Shown: piece after piece, positions 1-13,236 of the stretch
How the letters are laid out: each line of letters opens with the position of its first letter
How positions within the stretch are numbered: position 1 is the first letter of the stretch
Assembly: GCA_037447605.1 (NCBI GenBank)
Contig: CM074820.1
Location: forward strand, 1,550,001 to 1,614,000
From: Zygnema circumcarinatum SAG 698-1b
Taxonomy: Eukaryota > Plantae > Zygnematophyceae
Length of the DNA: 64,000 bases
Direction of reading: 5' to 3'
Program-made: the position numbers and the translations under genes
Notes under the pieces: generated by a model
The model's input: the letters and a program-made list of their open reading frames with translations, nothing else
What the model was told of the DNA's origin: nothing
Databases searched by the model: none

Positions 1-480
1 TGGGGGGATGGGGGATGGGGAGGGGGTTTTAGCACGCATTAAACTTGTTGTATTCTTAAACTGCCAGGGAGTGTGGCGTCGCCGCAAAACTCAAGGAGCC
101 CCAATGTGGTCAACGTCATGTGAGTAGGCCTTCTTCAAACTAGCCACAAACGCACCAGTTTTTAGAATTATATTCAGCGCACGATGAATTGGAATGTAAA
201 GAAACTGCAAACTCGAAACATGTAGGTAAAAGTCGAAACTATCTATTATAAACTCAGAAAGTACGTCTGTCACGTGGTAAATTGGTCCTCAAGTATGGTG
301 TTTAAACCATGGTCTGCGGCCAATTATTGCTCCTGCGTACATAAGATAACACTTGTAGGAAGATGGGCTTGAGGAAGTGCCAACATGTGTCTGTGACTTT
401 ACTTCGGTCTCCCTTCCATTCTCAGACATGGCTATCCTTCGGACCCAACTGCTGCCCCTCTCCCTCTCTTTCTCAGAACC

Positions 481-2855
481 ATGCTTAGACCTGTTGACCA
501 TCCTGAACCCTCTCTCCCGCCCCTACCCACCAGCCGTTCTTTCCAGGTCCCAAAGAGAAAGCTGCTCTCCCTCGCTTCTCCAACTTGGCGTCGTCCTCCT
601 CCAACTTCACCCCCTCTTCAATATAAGATAATTCCTCTCTCCAGTAGCTTTCGTAGACCCCCCCCTGCAAAACCTCCTGTAGACCCCCCAAAACCTCCGT
701 AGACCCCCTGCAAACCCCTTTCGTAGACCCCCTGCAAAACCCTCCGTAGACCCCTGCCAAACCCCCTTCTGTAGACCCCCTGTAAAACCCCTCCGTAGAC
801 CCCCTGTAAAACCCCTCCGTAGACCCCCCCCTGCAAAACCCCTCCGTAGACCTCCCCCTAGGCGGCCTCCCCCCCGCAGCCCTCCCCCAAGGCGCCCTCC
901 CCCACGAAGCCCTCCCCCTAGGCTGCCCCCCCCCAGTAGACCCCCCCCCGGGCGGCCCCCTCCCCGGAGCCCCCCCCCCAGCCCCCCTCCCCCTTCCCCC
1001 CCTTCCCCCCCTCCTGCTCCACCTCCCCCATTCGTCAAATTCCGGCCCTTCCCACCTGCTCCTCCCTTTGACAATAGTACCTTCGATGAGGCGATGGAGA
1101 TGCCCTCCCTCCTCAGCTCATATAATGCTGGCAACGTTGCCATCCGGGATTCCTGGGTAAAACTTACATTCAATGCTGATGGAGGTCAGCAATGCGATCT
1201 CTTAACCTTGAAAGCCTACTCCTGTTCTCTCTCTTCCTCTTTCTCTGTTACTCACCCTCTGCTTCTCTTTTCTTGCTCACGCTCTCGATTGATGTTGCCT
1301 GTGCAGGGGCACGCTGGCAGACAAAGACGTACACTTCAGGGCTCTTCCGGGCAGCCATCACTTGTCCTGCAGGAAATGCCTCCGGACTTCTCACAAGCTT
1401 CTTTGTCAGTAGCTCCTAACCACGTTGCTCTTTACTTTACTCGAGGCACGGACTATCCATATCTCAAACTTTCCCTCGAATGCTTCACCACTCATGCAAC
1501 TCCCATCCCTATTTGTTTAATCAAAGAACCGGCATTTACGAAATTGTGTCATGTGGAGTTCTATGTAACAGTTGGAGACACATCCCAGCGCAGAGAGCCC
1601 ATCTGGACTTGGCTTCGAATTTCCGGGACTCCATTCCAATTGGGTGTATGCAACATGGACTGTTGGAGGGGTGAAATCGAGTGCGCTTATGGGCCTCAGC
1701 TTTGACTGCTCCGTGGAAACTCACGTATTCAGCATTTACTGGACCCCCGAGTACTCTGCGTGAGTGAAAGCTCAAACTTCAGAGCACTAAAGTCATTCAT
1801 AATGTGCTACAAATTTAGGATATCGTAATGTTTCAAGAATCTTGGTGTTCACACGGCCGATGCTGTGCTTTTAGTATTCAAGCTTTGAGGTTTGTAAGAT
1901 TCTTATGGAAGTGTCGGCGGGATCGACAGGATGCTGCAGATTTAGAGTTTGCAGGTTGCCAGTCATTTTCACGTTTTTCAAAGGATTGGAGTTTTTGAGG
2001 GTTGACGGTCGGCCAATTTGGGCGATGCAGGTGGTTTGTAGATCAGGTAATGGTGTACGCGAAGGTCAATATCGTGGGCAAGCCATACGTAACTTCGCCT
2101 CTTTATCTCTTTGGATCCATTGAAGATGGGTCCTCCATCAATGGCGGGAAGTATGCAGGCGTGCTTTTAGACAGCACAAAGCGCTCTTTTTTTGCAAATT
2201 TCAGTGGTAAGTTTGCCTCTGAACCCCAAGTCCTTCCCATTGCTGTAATGCAGAGCAGAGAAGGAACTTCATGCTTAAGTCATGCTTGAGCCCTAAGATA
2301 TTTACAAGTTTAAGGCCGACAATACGAAATCCAAAATCGTCAGAAGTCATAAAATACATTCATTTTTTTCGGCTGCCTAAATGTCTGATGAGTTACTTGA
2401 ACTCAACTTGCAGGAGTGGCTGTTCTTTCTCCTCTTGAACCTCCGTCGGCCGCACCCCCCCCCCCCNNNNNNNNNNTTACTAACCCCTGCCCCCCGTGTC
2501 TACCCTCCACCCCCCACCCCCCCCCCCCACTCCTCCCCTCTCCCCTCTCGCCTCTCCCCTCTCCCCTCTCCCCTCTCCCCTCTCCCCCCCTCCCTTTCCC
2601 CCCCTCCCTCTCCCCCTCCCTCTCCCTCTCCCCAGATGGTACGTCGACGGCCAGGCGGTGCGCATGGTGGTGAACACGGGCGCATCGGACGGCGGGCTGT
2701 TCCCCAAAAAGGCGCTGTACGTGTACGGATCGCTGTGGGACGCGTCCTGGATCTGCGGGGGGTGCTGGGCGGGCCGCCGCAGCAACGCGACGCTCGGGGA
2801 GGACTTCGTCTTCTACGCGCGCTTCCGCAACATGCGCGTGCTCTCGCCTGTCTGA
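481..2855 (+). CDS. EG16: Multi-domain GH16/EG16 paralogue 1: Pro-rich extensin-like region, degenerate GH16 domain, then EG16 domain whose middle exons are lost in an assembly gap; 5' end unresolved
   Basis: Spliced exons give ...[41 protein letters not shown]|GARWQTKTYTSGLFRAAITCPAGNASGLLTSFF|LETHPSAESPSGLGFEFPG...GLSFDCS...WTPEYSA|WFVDQVMV...FANFS|GVAVLSPLEPPSAAPPP [N gap 2467-2476] ...WYVDGQAVR...[20 protein letters not shown]...RVLSPV*. Motifs GARW, CP.GN.SG, LGFDCS and YASLWDAS match the plant EG16 subfamily of GH16 (from recalled family motifs). Exon structure matches the paralogue at 5904-11999. Confidence 0.85.
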
Positions 2856-4084
2856 CGACCGGGCCTAAAACCCTGAAAACCCTAAAAACCCTAAAACCCT
2901 AAAAACCCTAAGGCCCCTTCAGCCAAAGTCCAAACATGGCCAGCATGGCACTGTCTGACTGCTGCATACAAAATGAGGGTGAGGAAGCTGGAAAGGAGAG
3001 GGAACGAAGAATGGAGGAGGGATGGGAGGGGGAAGCACTCATTGAAGGCCGGATGTTGGAGTCGATGTGTTTTCACTTTCGTGCTTTTGCAGTAGGGTAT
3101 GGGCCGGAACTGCCATTGCGGCGATCCTGCTAAGCGGAAGCCAATCAAGGTTTGCTACGCCTGCAAGCATTTTGCTGGACGATTGGTCCAATTTTTAGAG
3201 GGCACCCTCAAAAGTGCTCGCCATGTGTGTACTCAGCGATTATATGAGGAGACATGGCAAAACAAATCTTTATTCGTTTTAGGGTTTTAGGCTGAAGTTC
3301 CACCGTATGCTTCGCCAATTTAATTCTCTTAGGGTACTTTTAGCAGTATCGCACTAAAGGATATTAGATTCATTAAGATGTTCATGATTCTTTGAATTAG
3401 AAACGGCACGGAACTGAGAAACCTTATCGGGATTGGTGTGGCCTTTTTGGGCTCGCTGAAAAAGATTTTTTATTTAAAGGTTTGAGGATCTTCATCATCA
3501 TAGCTCGATGACTGTGATAGGCCTCTGCACGTAAGTTGTCAGTGCGTATGCACGCGAATTTTATCAATAAAGCATGTCCAATTCTTGATGGCTGTACTGT
3601 TTAACAGACTCTGTGCGCCTCTCCTTTCCCCTCTCTCTCTCTCTCTCCCTCAACTCTCCTCTCGCCTCTCTCTCTCTCTCTCCCTCAACTCTCCTCTCGC
3701 CTCTCTCTCTCTCTCCTCTCACCTCTCTCTCTCCTCTCTCTCTCTTCTCGCCTCTCGCCTCTCTCCTCTCTCCGCTCTCCTCTCTCTCCTCTCTCTATTC
3801 GTAGTGAATGCGGTTGCGCTTTCTCTAACATAAGCAGCTGCCAACCGGGGAGAGAAGAGCGGCAGGGCGATGATAAGTGAGCAAGGCATTGGGAGGAGGG
3901 CGGCTTGCTTGTTTGAGAAGGTTTTCATGGCAGGGGGGTTGTGCGGTACGGCATGCCTCGCTCACTTGACTAAAGCCTTCATCCTAAAGGGAGTTCAATG
4001 TAACGTGGGGCGACGGCTTAGCCGCTGTGTTTGCTGAGTCTCATACATGACTCGATTTTTTACTCATATCAATTTTTTTCTTTT

Positions 4085-5903: not shown

Positions 5904-8900
5904 TCATAGCGGCGTGACGATGCGCATGTCTCGGTACCGCGCGAAGAAGGCGAAGGACGGGTCCCGCGTGGCGGGCGCGCGCAGGCCCGTCCAGCAGCCG
6001 CCGCAGATCCAGGACGCGTCCCACAGCGACGCGTACACGTACATCGCGCGCGTGGGGAACGGCTGGCCGTCCGATGCGTCGGTGTTCACGACCATGCGCA
6101 CCGCTCGGCCGTCGATGTACCATCTGAGGGGAGAGTGGGGTTTTAGGGGGAGTTGCGCGGGGAGGGGGGGGGCGGAGGTGTAAGCGGTGGGACGGGCAGT
6201 TATGGAAGGAGTTTGGGGGAGGGAGGGGTTGGGGAGAGGGTGAGGAAGGAGAGGGGGAGTGAAGGCAGAGAGTGAACGAGGGAGGGAGCGAGTTACGGGG
6301 AGTAATGAAAGGAGTTTGGGGGGAGGGAGGGGTTGGGGAGAGGGGGAGAGAAGGCAGGGAGTGAACGAGGGAAGGAGCGAGTTAGGGAGAGATGAAGGAG
6401 GGAAAGGGATATAGTGAAAAAGAGGAATGGACCTATGGAAAGAATGGAGGGAAAAAGGGGGGAAAGCATGAAGGGAGACAGTTGGGGAAGGAATGAAGGG
6501 AAAGAGAGAGAGCGAGGAGGGCGGGGTGGACTGGAGTGCGAGAGGGAGATGAAGGGGAATGGAGGGATGGAGGAAGGGGGGACAGGGAGGGAGGGGCAGG
6601 GGAAGGGAGAAAGAAGAGAAGAAGAACGAGGGAGGGGGAATTGGAGGGGGAGGGAGTGGGAGAGGGACAGGGGGAGGGGAAAGAGAGGGAGAGGGAGTGG
6701 AAGAGCTCGAGATAAAGAAAAGAAACGGGAGATACAGAAGCGAGAGGGATGAGGGCAAAAGTAGGAACGGGCCAGGACATATGAGAGAAGAGAAGCAAGG
6801 GGACATCGCCTTACATGATATGATATTCGTTCCATTCGATGGCATAGTTGTGGAATGCCTCCGAGCAGTCGTAGCCAAGGTCATGCCAGACTTCGTGACC
6901 TCCGATCCCATTAACATAATAATTGGACTGAATGATACTCTTATTTTTTCCAATGAATTCAAAATCAATTTCGTCTTGGTTGCCGGAGCCTTCCTGCGTA
7001 GATGTCTGCAGCATCGAGTACATCCGCAAAATGTTCAAAATGTTAGAGTTTCAAGACCTTTGTCAGGACTTTTCCAAGTTTGTATTGTTAATACATTCCC
7101 TTGGTCTTGAGATTTTTCCTTTCTCATTGTCCGCAGGCCTTCATAGTTAGTTATACGAATTGTAAACTGGTCGTTCTTCGACTGTACAATTATCGATCAA
7201 TGAGAACATTTCCCAGTTCTCCTCCTGTTAATCCCCAGACTGAGAATGGGGTGTAGGAACTGACATAGAAACTGGTGATCATGCCGCTCGTGTCATTATC
7301 AGGGCATTTGATGTCAGCGCTGATCAGACCGCTTTTGTAGCGAACCATCGACTGAAACCGAGACCCTGCCATCACATATGTGCCAACACAACTGCCATGA
7401 GGGAAGAGTGACTTCATATTTCAGGAAGGGTTTTCTAATTCCTTTTGGCGTTATTGGATTAGAGATTCTCGAGAAACAGTGCGCAAGGGGATTGAGCTGT
7501 AGAGCAACGGAGAAGGTGAAGAGGCAGGAGTGGGAGAGCGAGGGTGAGGGAGAGGGAGATGGAGAGGGAGAGGGAGAGAAAGGGGAAGAGTTAGGTAGGG
7601 AGGGAGGGAGGGAGTGGGATGAGGGATCAGTCAGGGTAAAGTGCTCACCACAATATCTGTCGAAACGAATGTCGACGTTTCCGCTCATGTTGCTCGCTCT
7701 GCATCCCTCACAGTTTCCGCTGCAATAGTTTGACTGTACCGGCGCTAACACGTCGCCACCTGACGGCGGGGGAGTGTCTGGCAGGGCGGAGGGCGGGGGG
7801 GGGGGCAGCGGAGGGCCAACAGGAGAAAGAAAAGACACTCCTGCAAGTCGACTCCAGGATACCAAAATTTCAAATTTCAGGCAGGCGATATAGAAACCGG
7901 TTATGAAGTTTTTGGCTGTGTCGGACTTTTGGTTTGTCGGCCTTATAAAACATTGGTGAATTTTCCGCGCCAAGTATTTGAAGTCTCCTGCATCTTCCCT
8001 ACTCTGTTCTATGTTGAAGATGGGAGGAAGGAAGGTAGGATTTGTGATATCGACTCACCCCTGAAGAAGGCATAAAAGTTGGAAGAGGTGCTGCCTGAAA
8101 ACACGCCTGCATACTCCCCGCCATTGATGGATGATCCGTCTTCAATGGACCCAAAGAGATAGAGGGGCGAAGTGATGTAATCGTTGCCTGGAATGTTGAG
8201 CTTTGCATGCACCATCACTTGGTCCACAAACCATCTGCATCACGCCCATTACCCAAGTCATCACACCCTAAATTCAGTAGAAACTTTAGAGACTTAAAGC
8301 CCTAAACCTCTCAAAAACCTTGACAAGTTGTAAACATTCAAGTGTGGAGCACACAATCAAATGTCGTATGCGCTTTTGTGGGAATCTTTCAAGCTTCAAA
8401 GCTTGGAAACTCAAACTCCAAGAAGCCACATAAGAACACGAAGATTTCAATACCCTGCAAAACCCTAAGATGGAAGCCCATTATCGATCAATACAGCGCG
8501 TTTGATCCTTCAAACTCACGCTGAGTAATCTGGGCCCCAATAAATGCTGAATAAGTGGCCTTTTGCTGAGCAATCAAAGCCGAGTCCGATAACTGCACTC
8601 CACTTCTGTCCTCCGAAAGTCCATGTTGCATACACCGTAGTGGAACTATCTCCCGGGAAGTCGAATCCAAGACCAGAGCTGGTTTCTACGTTGGGATGTG
8701 TCTCCAACTGTTGCATAAACGCCATTGATACAGTCATGAAGGGAAAACCAATTGGTTTTTGAAGGAGGACGGGAGCAGATGCGACAGCATTCGGGAAAAA
8801 ACTCACAGATTGGCACACAAACATTGACCTTTTTTTTACTCTTTTCTCAAATGGCTCAAGATTTGCTCGTTTGAACGTGAGCGATGTGATTACGGGCTAC

Positions 8901-11900
8901 TGACATAGAAGCTTGTTAGGAGACCGGAGGAAGCTCCTGCAGGGCAAGTTATGGTTGCCTGGAAGAGCCCTGAAGTGTACGAATTCGTCTGCCAGCGCGC
9001 ACCTGTAGCGGGAGAGGGAGAGGGAGGGGTAGAGGAAGAGGCAGAGAGAAGGCAAGGAACAGAAAGGAAGAGAGAGAGAAAGGGTTGGAGCTTAGAGACG
9101 GAGATAGAGGAGGGGAGAAGGAGAGGGAAAGCATAAGGAACTACATATTTGACTCTTATGAATAATCCATTGGCAACAAAGGCTTGCTCTCAGTAGCATT
9201 CGAATTCTTCATCTATTACACTGATACAAGTGTTCAGTCGGCCCATTGCTGACCTCCACTATCGTTGTATGTGAGCTTAACAGAGGTCGCTCCAATGAAG
9301 ACATTGTCGGCATTGTAGGAGCTGAGGAGGGAGGGTACCACTCGGGCCTCATAGAACATATTGGGGTTCAGAGGGGGGGCGGGAGGGAACGGCGGAAAGG
9401 TGAAGTTTTTGGGGGCTGGGGGGGGGGGAGGTATGGGAGGGGAGGGATAAGGTTTGGGGGGTGGCTTGGAAGGAGGTATGGGAGGGGAGGGATAAGATCC
9501 GGGAGCTGGCTGGGGGGGAGGTATGGAAGAGGAGGGATAAGGTTTGGGGGCTAGCTGCGGGGGAGGTATGGGAGGGGAGGGATAAGGGTTGGGGGCTGGC
9601 TGGGGGGGGGGTATGGGCCGGGGGGGATAAGGGTTGGAGGTTGGCTGGGGGGCAGAGGTGGAAGTACGTTTGGGCGGAGGGGGTTTAGGTTTGGGAGGGG
9701 AAGGCGAAGGCTTGGGAGGATGGAATGTAAATTTGGGAGGGGGGGGTTTAAGTTTGAATGGAGGAGGTTTAGGTTTGGGAGGGGAAGATGTAGGTTTGGG
9801 AAGTGGAGGGTTATGTTTGGGAGGGGAGGGTTTCAGTTTGAATGGAGGAGGTTTAGGTTTGGGAGGGGAAGATGTAGGCTTGGGAAGTGGAGGGTTATGT
9901 TTGGGAGGGGAGGGTTTCAGTTTGAATGGAGGAGGTTTAGGTTTGGGAGGGGAAGATGTAGGTTTGGGAAGTGGAGGGTTATGTTTGGGAGGGGAGGGTT
10001 TCAGTTTGAATGGAGGAGGTTTAGGTTTGGGAGGGGAAGATGTAGGCTTGGGAAGTGGAGGGTTATGTTTGGGAGGGGAGGGTTTTCCCCTCCCTCCCTC
10101 CTCCCTCCCTCCTCCTCCCTCCCCTCCCCTCCCTCCTCCCTCCTCCCTCCCCTCCCTCCTCCCTCCCTCCTCCCTCCTCCCTCCCTCCTCCCTCCTCCTC
10201 CCTCCCTCCTCCCTCCTCCCTCCTCCTCCCTCCCTCCTCCCTCCTCCCTCCTCCTCCCTCCCTCCTCCCTCCTCCTCCCTCCCTCCTCCCTCCTCCCTCC
10301 TCCCTCCTCCCTCCTCCTCCCTCCCCTCCCCTCCCTCCTCCCTCCCTCCTCCCTCCCTCCTCCCTCCTCCCTCCTCCCTCCTCCCTCCTCCTCCCTCCCT
10401 CCTCCCTCCTCCTCCCTCCCCTCCCTCCCCTCCCTCCCCTCACCCGAGCGAGCCCGCCACAGCGAGAGGTGCGCGAGGGCCGCCCCTTTGCCCGCGTCCT
10501 CCGCTCCGCCGCGCGCGGAGGAGGAGGCGAAGGCCACCGCGCTGACGTCACTGCGCGCCACGAACTCGAAGGACCGCTCCGTCCACTCCCGCGTCTGCGC
10601 CCGCCACGTGGCACCCCCCCGCCGTCACGCCGTCACGCCTCCCTCCTGGCGGGACCGGACCGGACCGGACCGGACCGGACCGGACCGGACCGGACCGGAC
10701 CGGACCGGACCGGAGCAAGAGGGGGGGGCGCACCATCCTCTCGGCGAAGAAGTCCATCGCGAGCAGCGCCCCCTCGCGGCGGTCCGCGACGGTGAGCAGC
10801 AGCTCCGCGGGGCCGCCCTCCAGCGCCGCCGACTGCACGCGCACGCGCCCGCGGTAGGCCGCGCCACGTGTCGTGCGCACCGCCTGCCACACCGCCTGCC
10901 CGGGCACTGCAGGCCCGCCCACTCGCACTCAGCGGGAGGGAGGGAGGGAGGGAGGGAGGGAGGGAGGGAGGGAGGGAGGGAGGGAGGGAGGGAGGGAGGG
11001 AGGGAGGAGGGAGGGAGGGAGGGAGGGAGGGAGGGAGGGAGGGAGGAGGGAGGGAGGGAGGGAGGGAGGGAGGGAGGGAGGGATGGAGGGAGGGAGGAGG
11101 GAGGGAGGGAGGGAGGGAGGGAGGGAGGAGGGAGGGAGGGAGGGAGGGAGGGAGGGAGGGAGGAGGGAGGGAGGGAGGGAGGGAGGGAGGGAGGGAAGGA
11201 GGGAAGTGAGGGAGGGGATGGAGGGAGGGAGGGAGGGAGGGAGGGAGGGAGGGAGGGGAGGGAGGGAACTCCCGTATGAGGTGGTGCGAACCTGCGGGCA
11301 GGAGCACATAGTGGGAGGCGGCCGAGCGCCCGCGAAGAGAGCGGCTGCTGTCGTTCAGAAACGCCACGTGGCGTCCCGTCACGTGCCACGTGGCGTTAGA
11401 AGATTGGACGAAGTCGCCGTTCTCTATGAGCTCTGCACGGAGAGGAGGGGGTGAAGTTAAGGAGAGGATGGGAGAGGAGACGGAGGGAGCAGGAGGGATA
11501 GGAGGAGAGAATAAAGTGAAGGGGAAGGAGAGCGGGTAGGGAAGGATGATGATTTAAGGTGCGAATGATATATAGGTGGAGACGATCGAGAGGATAAAGG
11601 GAAAGAGTGAGAGACCAATGAAAGTGGGGGAAAGGAGAATATTGGGGAGTATGTTGATTGAGAGAGGAGAGGTGGGAGAGGAGAGATTAGAGGAAAAGCA
11701 GAAGAGAGACACACAGAGTAGGTGAAATGTATATCTTAATTTGTAGAGATAAAGGGGGAAAGTGAGAGTGCGGCAAGAGGGTTATGTATGCATTGTAGAG
11801 AGAGGCGGCCCTCCCTCCCTCCCTCTCTCCCTCCCTCCCTCCCNNNNNNNNNNCCCTCCCTCCCTCCCTCCCTCCCCAATCGCAGTTTCTTGTCCTCACC

Positions 11901-11999
11901 TCCTCCACCGCCGCTACTTCCATAGCAAGCAGTCAGCAGAATCAGAATTGTCAGTTTGAGCGGCAGCCATGGCGGCGTGCTGCAGGGGTTGGAGGCCAT
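5904..11999 (-). CDS. EG16: Secreted multi-domain GH16/EG16 paralogue 2: signal peptide, DUF642/CBM-like beta-sandwich, Pro-rich linker, catalytically dead GH16, intact EG16 domain
   Basis: Exon 1 (11999-11900) [32 protein letters not shown]; exon 2 [20 protein letters not shown]...; then [21 protein letters not shown] and [22 protein letters not shown]...LAHLSLW; Pro-rich repeats 9350-10080; degenerate domain ([23 protein letters not shown]); intact domain GSRFQS...KCPDNDTSG...[24 protein letters not shown]...LGYDCS...WYIDG...YASLWDAS...RIVTPL*. Splice phases are consistent across the GH16 exons. One in-frame TGA (10625-10627) and an abrupt junction near 10085 leave the link to the 5' part less certain. 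Confidence 0.85.
10654..10712. repeat. (GGACC)n pentanucleotide microsatellite in an EG16-2 intron
   Basis: About 11 perfect ggacc units. Confidence 0.9.
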
Positions 12000-13236
12000 G
12001 GCGGCCGCGGACGAGAAGTTCCAGGAGGGATAGAGGGAGGGAGGAAAGGAGAGAGGAAGGAAGGAATGGAAGGAGGTAGAGGGGGAGGAAAGGTGAGTGG
12101 TGGGGAAACTTGTAAGGATGGAGGAGAGTGGGACGAGCTGATGGGGGGGAAGGAGGGAGGGTGGGAGGGAGGGAGGGGGGGTGAAGGCAGGGAGGGAGGG
12201 AGTGGGATAGAGAGAGCGTGAGAGATGGATAGCGGAGGAGAGGAAGGGAAGGAGGAGATAGAGAGAGAGAGTGAGAGGGAGGGAGGGAGGGAGGGAGGGG
12301 GAGGTAGAGCCGCCGTCAGTGCGCCGTCCCCAAATCGGATACCCGTAGAAATGAAGTAAACTGGTCTAACCATTTCTCAACCTGTTCGTAACACGGTCAG
12401 CGACGATTAGAAGACAACATTGATGACGTACTGCCCTGGTCGAATGTCGGATCTTTAAGACCCGCCTCGTACACTATTAATGTCGGTTCCAATGTCGGTG
12501 CGTGTCGGTGGATGTCGGTGGATGTCAGCATTGGCATACTACTTGCAGCATACGACAAGTCAGCACAGACCGCGTCAATCCGAGTCCTACGGACATTACG
12601 TCGGCGACACGCCCTCGCGGCGGCGGATCTTGGACCGTTCGTCTTTCTCGTTTTTTTCGAGGAGCCAAAATTTTTAATTTCTTTGTTTCTGAACCTGTCC
12701 GGGTTCGGATCCCCAGGTGGCCGCCACGCCATACGAACACGATGTACCATCTCCGTACGGCACCAGCTCCGTCTGGTGCTGTAGGCCCGGATGGCGGCCG
12801 CGGGAGGGATCTTCTGTACGGTTGGGCGGTTTGCGGGTGGGATCGCCTGTATGGTTTGGCGGCTTGAGAGTGATCAGCGGCAGTCGGGTCCAATGCAGGC
12901 GATGGTGGACGATGATGTGGCATGACACGAATGGCTGGATGACTTTCAGCAGTACGTCGGCAGGTTGAGCTAGGTCGGTTCCATCCGTCCCTAGGTCGGT
13001 TCATCATCGCCTGAATCGTCCGTGACTGTCAGCAAGCGACAAAAAACCATTCCTTTCTTTTGTCGTTTTTTCAATCCAACTACTCGGCGCATTAAATACG
13101 TTACTTATGGAATTTCTGTCGTCAGTTAACGAATCAGATCATGCCACGTCCTTTTCTCGTCATTTTGCAGAGCTCTGATTGGCTCGGTCGTTAGCTTTTT
13201 TTGCCGCGTACCTTCCAAGCGACGACCTTAAATTTT

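Follow-up and report, generated by a model that had tools for sequence, protein, structure and literature searches.

We analysed a 64,000-nucleotide stretch of the genome of the alga Zygnema circumcarinatum SAG 698-1b (contig CM074820.1, positions 1,550,001 to 1,614,000; henceforth the window, in whose own numbering all coordinates are given), focusing on a gene that lies on its minus strand and runs from position 11999 to position 5904. The gene comprises 12 exons, and its predicted protein of about 856 amino acids (aa) can be divided into a signal-peptide-like start, a DUF642-like beta-sandwich module, a Pro/Lys-rich stalk and two GH16 domains in tandem, the first with a disrupted catalytic motif (domain 1) and the second with an intact one (domain 2). 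An earlier note on this DNA, made from the sequence alone, had described a secreted four-module enzyme of the EG16 type, and we found the four modules on the minus strand as it had claimed: every peptide block that it quoted was visible in a three-frame translation of this strand from 12100 to 5700, and the modules were located by tandem-repeat analysis (stalk repeats), by comparison with hidden Markov models (HMMs; GH16 domains) and by hydropathy (signal peptide).

The exon structure draws on contigs of four public RNA runs that were aligned to positions 6020-12019, with spliced forms found in three of the runs (X1, X15 and X16; one organism). Spliced contigs supported 9 of the 11 introns, namely 10907-11291, 10595-10733, 9003-9253, 8708-8904, 8235-8519, 7841-8058, 7366-7648, 7006-7264 and 6124-6814 (coordinates given after joint shifts permitted by the contig placement), and the CT..AC borders seen on the plus strand correspond to GT..AG on the minus strand. 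The ATG at 11999 (sequence context GCCGCCATGG), the GTGAGG donor after 11900, the acceptor before 11432 and the RNA-supported joints together give a reading frame that stays open to the stop codon at 5906-5904. In three runs, spliced contigs connected the DUF642-like exons with one another, and likewise the Pro-rich and GH16 exons. Specifically, a 790-nt contig of X1 joined exon 12 to exon 11 and extended about 380 nt into the 3' untranslated region, and a contig of X15 ran unbroken over 9252-9780, i.e., from the first strands of domain 1 through a set of 15-aa repeats into a set of 28-aa repeats. The RNA mapping that the earlier note had proposed as a check for a single transcript succeeded for nine introns in three runs, and left the joints between exons 1 and 2 and between exons 4 and 5 unbridged.

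Exon 1 (11900-11999), recognised by its frame and hydropathy in a stretch that no RNA contig covers, begins with the start codon at 11999-11997 and ends at a GTGAGG donor in phase 1. Residues 1-27 consist of an n-region ending at Lys 15, a hydrophobic core of 10 residues and the sequence CYG|SS, with a hydropathy peak of 2.7 at residues 16-24; this n-h-c layout fits that of a signal peptide, and the N-termini of homologues are comparable, so that we refer to the region as signal-peptide-like. The putative intron that follows (intron 1, 11433-11899; joint without RNA confirmation) contains an assembly gap, a run of N at 11844-11853 inside a (CCCT)n microsatellite that extends on both sides of it. 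Given that the gap lies within the putative intron, no codon is touched by it. Unspliced contigs from three RNA runs covered 11405-11796, i.e., most of this putative intron, at a quarter to half of the exon depth, which suggests a retained intron or pre-mRNA.

The continuity of exon 1 with exon 2 is supported by four indirect points. The splice phases agree across the putative intron (phase 1 on both the donor and the acceptor side), and extending the frame of exon 2 upstream yields no Met before a stop codon is reached. Furthermore, the spliced contigs break off at 11434, which is 2 nt short of the acceptor of exon 2; a break at this point would follow from an upstream exon with a terminal AG, and exon 1 has one. 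Finally, the homologues have a signal peptide directly before their DUF642-like domain.

Exons 2 to 4 encode residues 34-188, which form a beta-sandwich module with the pattern ELIENGDF...SFEFVA...LAHLSLW. Exon 2 (11292-11432) contributes the first third of the module (ELIENGDF...HYVLLPA), exon 3 (10734-10906) its middle and exon 4 (10444-10594) its end (...LAHLSLW), followed by a GTGAGG donor at 10443; the joints 11292/10906 and 10734/10594 were both found in all three runs, and homologue alignment identified exons 2 and 3. Aligned to the N-terminal domain of five database proteins, these three exons tile that domain without overlap or gap. Homologues matched the Pfam family PF04862 (DUF642) in 5 out of 5 cases at an E-value of 0.1 or better (best E 4e-13), with P0021, a homologue described below, exceeding the gathering score of the family (34.3 vs. 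27 bits), and the spliced N-terminal module of our gene scored 101.8 bits against an HMM built from four homologues alone. The evidence that this module belongs to DUF642 is hence indirect but strong. An AlphaFold model of the corresponding domain of P0021 (residues 38-215; mean predicted local distance difference test score 73.5) has ten strands and resembles CBM4-2, CBM22, CBM16 and CBM61 (Foldseek E 3e-8 to 1e-5, template modelling (TM) score about 0.55) as well as a cluster of streptophyte DUF642 proteins (TM score 0.74); a profile of the N-terminal module searched against PDB sequences gave no match. The earlier description of the module as DUF642/CBM4-like agrees with both the Pfam matches and the modelled fold, which is predicted to be a CBM4/CBM22-type beta-sandwich and may bind sugars.

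Exon 5 (9254-10093) encodes the stalk and then the first strands of domain 1, and its joint to exon 6 (9254/9002) was found in X1 and X15. The stalk spans residues 189-431 (243 aa), of which 48% are Pro and 14% Lys, with an isoelectric point of 11, and contains two tandem repeats: an 84-nt unit in 4.9 copies at 9676-10085 (94% matches), corresponding to a 28-aa repeat present four times at 10085-9750, and a 45-nt unit in 5.4 copies at 9408-9652, corresponding to about five copies of a 15-aa repeat. We found no SPPP motif and 12 SPP motifs in the stalk, and no Tyr in the 28-aa repeat. The term "extensin-like" used previously was accordingly loose, and judging by its composition the stalk is better described as Lys-rich and PRP-like than as a classical extensin.

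Between exons 4 and 5 lies a 350-nt (AGGAGGG)n stretch (repeat at 10088-10437) that is purine-rich on the coding strand, has all three frames open and is opposite in polarity to the CT-rich low-complexity introns found elsewhere in the gene. Given that the frame changes between the two exons as assembled, either an intron or an assembly indel is needed here. We modelled the stretch as a putative intron (intron 4, 10094-10443) whose acceptor is uncertain: from the donor at 10444 there are 33 in-frame AG acceptor sites between 10093 and 10420, and none of them is CAG. A tentative alternative is that 10094-10443 is coding and adds a linker of about 115 aa, rich in Gly, Glu and Arg, that separates the DUF642 module from the stalk; the frame change would then be an assembly indel in a 7-nt microsatellite. 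The three open frames, the purine-rich coding strand (as opposed to the CT-rich confirmed introns) and the missing CAG acceptor all fit this alternative, as do the 5% indels that the repeat carries and the linkers of about 100-290 aa that homologues have at the corresponding place (Glu/Gly-rich in the Closterium protein P0017). By contrast, the DUF642-like domain ends precisely at a consensus GTGAGG donor, reading through the stretch as assembled leads to a stop at 10004, and RNA depth was 0 over 10220-10419 in all runs, though the read alignment skipped this repeat. Whether the stretch is an unusual intron or a coding linker with a small assembly error, the set of modules is unchanged.

The same unbridged interval bears on whether exons 1 to 12 make up one gene, which we consider very probable. 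Two separate genes, with exons 1-4 encoding a small secreted protein that has DUF642 as its sole domain and the exons downstream encoding the Pro-rich region and tandem GH16 domains, would be compatible with the finding that no contig spans 10444 to 10093 and that word searches returned no database protein spanning the exon 4-exon 5 region of this gene. Word-index protein searches with the exon 4 and exon 5 regions gave no matches at all, the gene's own protein being apparently absent from the collection, and the same kind of search with the DUF642 region of P0021 found P0021 itself and nothing else. We nevertheless regard a division into two genes as very unlikely. The first in-frame Met of the Pro-rich exon is residue 434 (NPNMFY), which means that this exon cannot by itself start a secreted protein, and the downstream part has neither a start codon nor a signal peptide before that Met. 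Moreover, five homologues, including one known from a single assembled transcript, show the modules in the same collinear order, the whole arrangement is duplicated as one block in a neighbouring paralogue, and both parts of the gene are expressed in the same three runs.

The remaining exons encode the two GH16 domains, both of which matched the GH16 family HMM: domain 1 (residues about 432-622) with an E-value of 9.4e-43 over positions 17-190 of 197, and domain 2 (about 655-856) with an E-value of 1e-87. Domain 1 continues from exon 5 through exon 6 (8905-9002) and exon 7 (8520-8707) to its end in exon 8 (8059-8234), all with RNA-supported joints, exons 6 and 8 being assigned by the family HMM. 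Exon 7 holds the core, and its best match in the PDB was VvEG16 (structures 5DZE, 5DZF, 5DZG and 5SV8), to whose catalytic strand the motif SGLGFDF (8677-8657) aligned, at the position of a catalytic DEIDFEF. The catalytic ExDxE is thus lost in domain 1: the nucleophile Glu is replaced by Gly, the helper Asp by Gly and the acid/base Glu by Asp.

Domain 2 is preceded by a short Pro-rich linker and a 10-residue motif (7730-7701), both in exon 9 (7649-7840) together with the first strands of the domain, and continues through exon 10 (7265-7365), exon 11 (6815-7005) and exon 12 (5904-6123), with the joints of exons 9 to 11 supported by RNA. Exon 11 contains the catalytic core with DEIDFEF intact (6975-6955), and exon 12 the end of the domain with WICGGCW (6011-5991) and the stop codon. 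Each of the exons 10, 11 and 12 matched PF00722 (E 3.6e-5, 1e-17 and 2.3e-7, respectively), covering profile positions 31-160. Compared with VvEG16, the core exon was about 62% identical over 58 residues (E 1.9e-20); matches to licheninases were weaker (E 1e-15) and those to XTH weaker still (E 1.2e-6, about 14 orders of magnitude short of EG16). PF00722 was the sole Pfam match of the last exon, with no XET_C, and the protein ends with domain 2. On sequence, domain 2 falls outside the XTH group (GH16_20), and the view of the earlier note that the first GH16 domain is dead was borne out, the second being intact and closest to VvEG16.

Each GH16 domain is interrupted by three introns at homologous positions and in the same phases (G|[AS]R, SFY| and |W.[VI]D), and the lengths of the corresponding exons differ by exactly 3 nt (98 vs. 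101 and 188 vs. 191). These matching intron positions and exon lengths imply that the pair arose by duplication of an intron-bearing unit. The pair is also found elsewhere: Pfam detected two GH16 stretches in 6 out of 6 homologues tested (P0005, P0010, P0013, P0017, P0020 and P0021).

To place the gene among its relatives, we used the catalytic exon in an exhaustive search, which gave 682 relatives, about 25 of the best of which had two GH16 stretches. Five proteins were collinear with our gene over its full length, signal peptide included: two from Closterium NIES-53 and NIES-54 (P0005 and P0152), one from Closterium Naga37s-1 (P0017), one from Spirogloea muscicola (P0169, with little Pro-rich sequence between DUF642 and domain 1), and P0021, a 1039-aa protein in EukProt from a single Trinity transcript with a signal peptide, DUF642, a linker, a Pro-rich region, an EGFGFDF domain and a DEIDYEF domain. 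The nearest relatives came from Netrium (a fragment, 48% identical), Closterium and the Trinity transcriptome of P0021. The GH16 core alone, with a dead first and a live second domain, was found in Spirogloea, Mesotaenium, Closterium, Netrium, Sphagnum (whose tandem proteins lie in a cluster of 65 members), Selaginella and Adiantum. Among streptophyte tandem proteins, domain 1 lacked the nucleophile Glu and the Asp in 20 out of 20, and the second domain kept the nucleophile and acid/base Glu in all 20, the middle Asp being Ile in the Selaginella protein P0042.

A maximum-likelihood tree of 75 GH16 domains (support given as paired values) recovered streptophyte domains as a group (100/100), all 20 streptophyte dead domains as one clade (98/92) and the land-plant EG16 proteins as another (100/98; Glycine, Nyssa, Taxus, Psilotum and Paspalum). 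Domain 2 fell outside the latter, in a separate clade (98/95), and at the backbone of the tree EG16, the domain 2 groups and Klebsormidium met in a polytomy; domain 2 is best classified, as far as its sequence goes, as EG16-like rather than as a canonical EG16. The DUF642-bearing subfamily, represented in the tree by this gene, P0021, Netrium, two Closterium lineages and Spirogloea P0004/P0169, formed a clade in both domain 1 (100/96) and domain 2 (98/95), which indicates that the modules have travelled together. The GH16 tandem is thus old, predating the split between zygnematophytes and land plants, and the variant with DUF642 is, in the present sampling, confined to zygnematophytes. Two sets of sequences in the tree deserve mention. 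P0018/P0177, a tandem GH16 protein from the EukProt transcriptome of the alga-eating amoeba Leptophrys vorax, grouped tightly with Closterium NIES-54 in both domain trees and is most likely prey sequence. P0003/P0168, from Paspalum vaginatum and P. notatum, have two EG16 domains, both with DEIDFEF, that grouped together inside the EG16 clade; they stem from a tandem fusion that is recent and has no relation to the ancient pair of one dead and one active domain.

The architecture had been put forward as one not recognised from plants, with its being widespread in databases named as what would refute that view. Given the collinear homologues in Closterium Naga37s-1, NIES-53 and NIES-54 and in Spirogloea muscicola, together with one Trinity transcript, the architecture is not unique, and its core reaches as far as ferns; what stood is that the DUF642 variant is limited to zygnematophytes in the present sampling. 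The new element is this variant N-terminal part, consisting of DUF642 and the Pro-rich region, while secreted charophyte EG16-2 proteins and the dead-plus-active core are not new.

The charophyte group EG16-2 is reportedly marked by an N-terminal extension. Our gene is likewise streptophyte-algal, and its N-terminal extension and putative signal peptide would be consistent with that group. The single-domain proteins of Klebsormidium subtile did not group with domain 2, owing to the polytomy of the backbone. According to PMC8711696, which cites Behar et al. 2018 for the group, EG16-2 proteins are EG16-related, mostly carry signal peptides (with secretion predicted for 5 out of 6 members in Klebsormidium nitens) and are uncharacterised, and a second source counts 12 EG16-2 genes in Penium and describes the group as multi-copy in zygnematophytes (10.1101/835561). 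The literature that we covered on EG16-2 and on DUF642 combined with GH16, a scope outside which Behar et al. 2018 fell, mentioned neither a dead twin domain nor a DUF642 fusion.

Land-plant EG16 enzymes, of which PtEG16 is named as a second example besides VvEG16, are single domains of about 205-230 aa that have no signal peptide, as had been stated earlier, and yet reach the cell wall (PMC9887094). Domain 2 resembles them in its DEIDFEF strand, in having VvEG16 as its best solved match and in the absence of an XTH-type C-terminal extension; the algal protein differs in its signal-peptide-like start, its three extra modules and the position of domain 2 outside the EG16 clade. The tandem GH16 proteins of Sphagnum, Selaginella, Adiantum, Mesotaenium and Closterium NIES-68 share the core of one dead and one intact domain, with the dead domains forming one clade, but they belong to other subclades and have a helical N-terminal region in place of DUF642 and the Pro-rich stalk.

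Seed-plant DUF642 wall proteins (e.g., BIIDXI, TEEBE and OsDFOT1) have two DUF642 domains each and stand alone, whereas the algal protein has a single DUF642 domain fused to GH16 domains; they share with it the Pfam family (via the homologues), a similar fold and secretion to the wall, which for the algal protein is a prediction. Reviews describe DUF642 as specific to spermatophytes and the seed-plant proteins as acting together with pectin methylesterases (PMC6651502, PMC13516882). A looser analogy is offered by the insect proteins beta-GRP/GNBP, which also combine a carbohydrate-binding module with a GH16 domain devoid of catalytic residues and use them in recognition; these, however, belong to an unrelated lineage, target beta-1,3-glucan, have no active GH16 partner and function in immunity.

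Taken together, we interpret the locus as one expressed 12-exon gene for a secreted zygnematophyte protein of about 856 aa, composed of a signal peptide, DUF642, a Pro/Lys-rich stalk, a dead GH16 domain and an intact EG16-like GH16 domain, and assign this interpretation a probability of roughly 0.62. Several observations count against it. Contigs stop at 11796, depth is 0-1 over 11820-12019 and no RNA contig bridges exons 1 and 2; likewise, none contains the joint between exons 4 and 5 across 10094-10443, where the read alignment skipped the repeat, and the putative intron there has neither a CAG acceptor nor a pyrimidine tract, although the ten other acceptors of the gene are all CAG. The assignment of a signal peptide relies solely on visual inspection and a hydropathy profile. 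When Pfam was run on the separate exon pieces, as the earlier note had suggested, PF00722 was found in the domain 2 exons, while the DUF642-like and domain 1 exons gave no match, which means that the identity of these two modules is taken from the homologues. Conservation of domain 1 is low, in that 17 columns reach 80% or more, compared with 61 in domain 2; this fits a binding or spacer role, without proving binding. Finally, the function proposed for the family comes from sequence and model comparison.

A far more sceptical view would take the locus for a non-functional copy, either decaying or misassembled, and could appeal to its assembly gap, its low-complexity DNA and the uneven GC3 of its exons (see below). 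We consider it extremely unlikely: no stop interrupts the frame over the twelve exons, transcripts are correctly spliced in three runs, the catalytic motif is preserved, and the odd GC3 of the last exon is common to the paralogue.

If our interpretation as a single secreted protein is correct, the protein would most likely be retained in the wall by its basic stalk and the DUF642 module. The stalk, probably hydroxylated and O-glycosylated, could hold the enzyme in an acidic, pectin-rich wall or mucilage; domain 2 would cut beta-1,4-linked wall glucans of the mixed-linkage glucan or xyloglucan type, by analogy with characterised EG16 enzymes; and the DUF642 module and the dead GH16 cleft would act as non-catalytic modules for glycan binding or targeting. 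Wall tethering and glycan binding, both proposed in the earlier note, are inferences in our account too. Kept for hundreds of millions of years though weakly conserved, domain 1 is probably a binding or regulatory partner. A different division of labour, somewhat doubtful in our view, is that domain 1 does not bind glycans and instead assists domain 2 structurally, in folding or by auto-regulation, and that domain 2 itself might be mainly a transglycosylase. Domain 1 keeps few conserved cleft residues, and GH16 relatives include transglycosylases such as XTH and CRH (PMC8711696). In addition, the combination of a dead and an active domain persists from zygnematophytes to ferns regardless of which N-terminal module accompanies it, which suggests that the pair itself may be the functional unit. 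As regards transglycosylation, on the other hand, the closest characterised enzymes, i.e., the EG16s, are hydrolases (PMC8711696, PMC9887094), and domain 2 does not have the C-terminal extension of XTH.

Several further features of the locus were observed. GC content at third codon positions (GC3) was 0.92-0.97 in two of the DUF642-like exons (10734-10906, with 0.97, and 10444-10594) and in the last exon (5904-6123, with 0.92), and 0.47-0.65 in six exons between them (in the range from exon 5 to exon 11). The pattern is exon-specific and common to the gene and its paralogue, whose last exon (2637-2855) has a GC3 of 0.93. A bacterial-type origin of the N-terminal module, an idea raised by the very high GC3, was dropped: the exons are spliced, the pattern recurs in the paralogue and the homologues come from streptophytes. 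Within the confirmed intron 10595-10733, positions 10652-10714 form a perfect (GGACC)12.6 microsatellite. Contigs from X1, X15 and X16 had loose ends at 10513 and 10601, matching the window upward of these points and then diverging; such contigs may have been transcribed from the paralogue or from a gene that shares a repeat.

The paralogue itself lies at the start of the window (480-2873, plus strand), tail to tail with the main gene. It comprises a Pro-rich region, four domain 1 exons (with SGLGFEF at 1572-1760) and the first part of the linker exon (2412-2466), followed by an assembly gap (2467-2476) and a last exon of the domain 2 type (2637-2855; 79% nucleotide identity). The three exons expected for the catalytic core are missing exactly at this gap, and may be hidden in it or deleted.

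EG16 and XTH are central to ideas on the evolution of the plant cell wall, and their algal relatives are uncharacterised. The earlier note had seen in this gene a bearing on the transition from EG16 to XTH; none of our results bears directly on that transition. A bolder scenario, which we regard as rather improbable, is that the fusion represents the ancestral state, i.e., a secreted, CBM-guided enzyme with a dead and an active GH16 domain, from which the stand-alone DUF642 proteins of seed plants, and possibly the single-domain EG16 without a signal peptide, were released later by domain loss, with the dead GH16 being a true recognition or regulatory module. If this were true, the dead GH16 would be the first GH16 pseudo-enzyme of the plant lineage with a defined role. 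The gene provides expressible constructs for three questions: what the dead GH16 domain does, which ligand the DUF642 module has, and whether secretion with targeting modules was ancestral.

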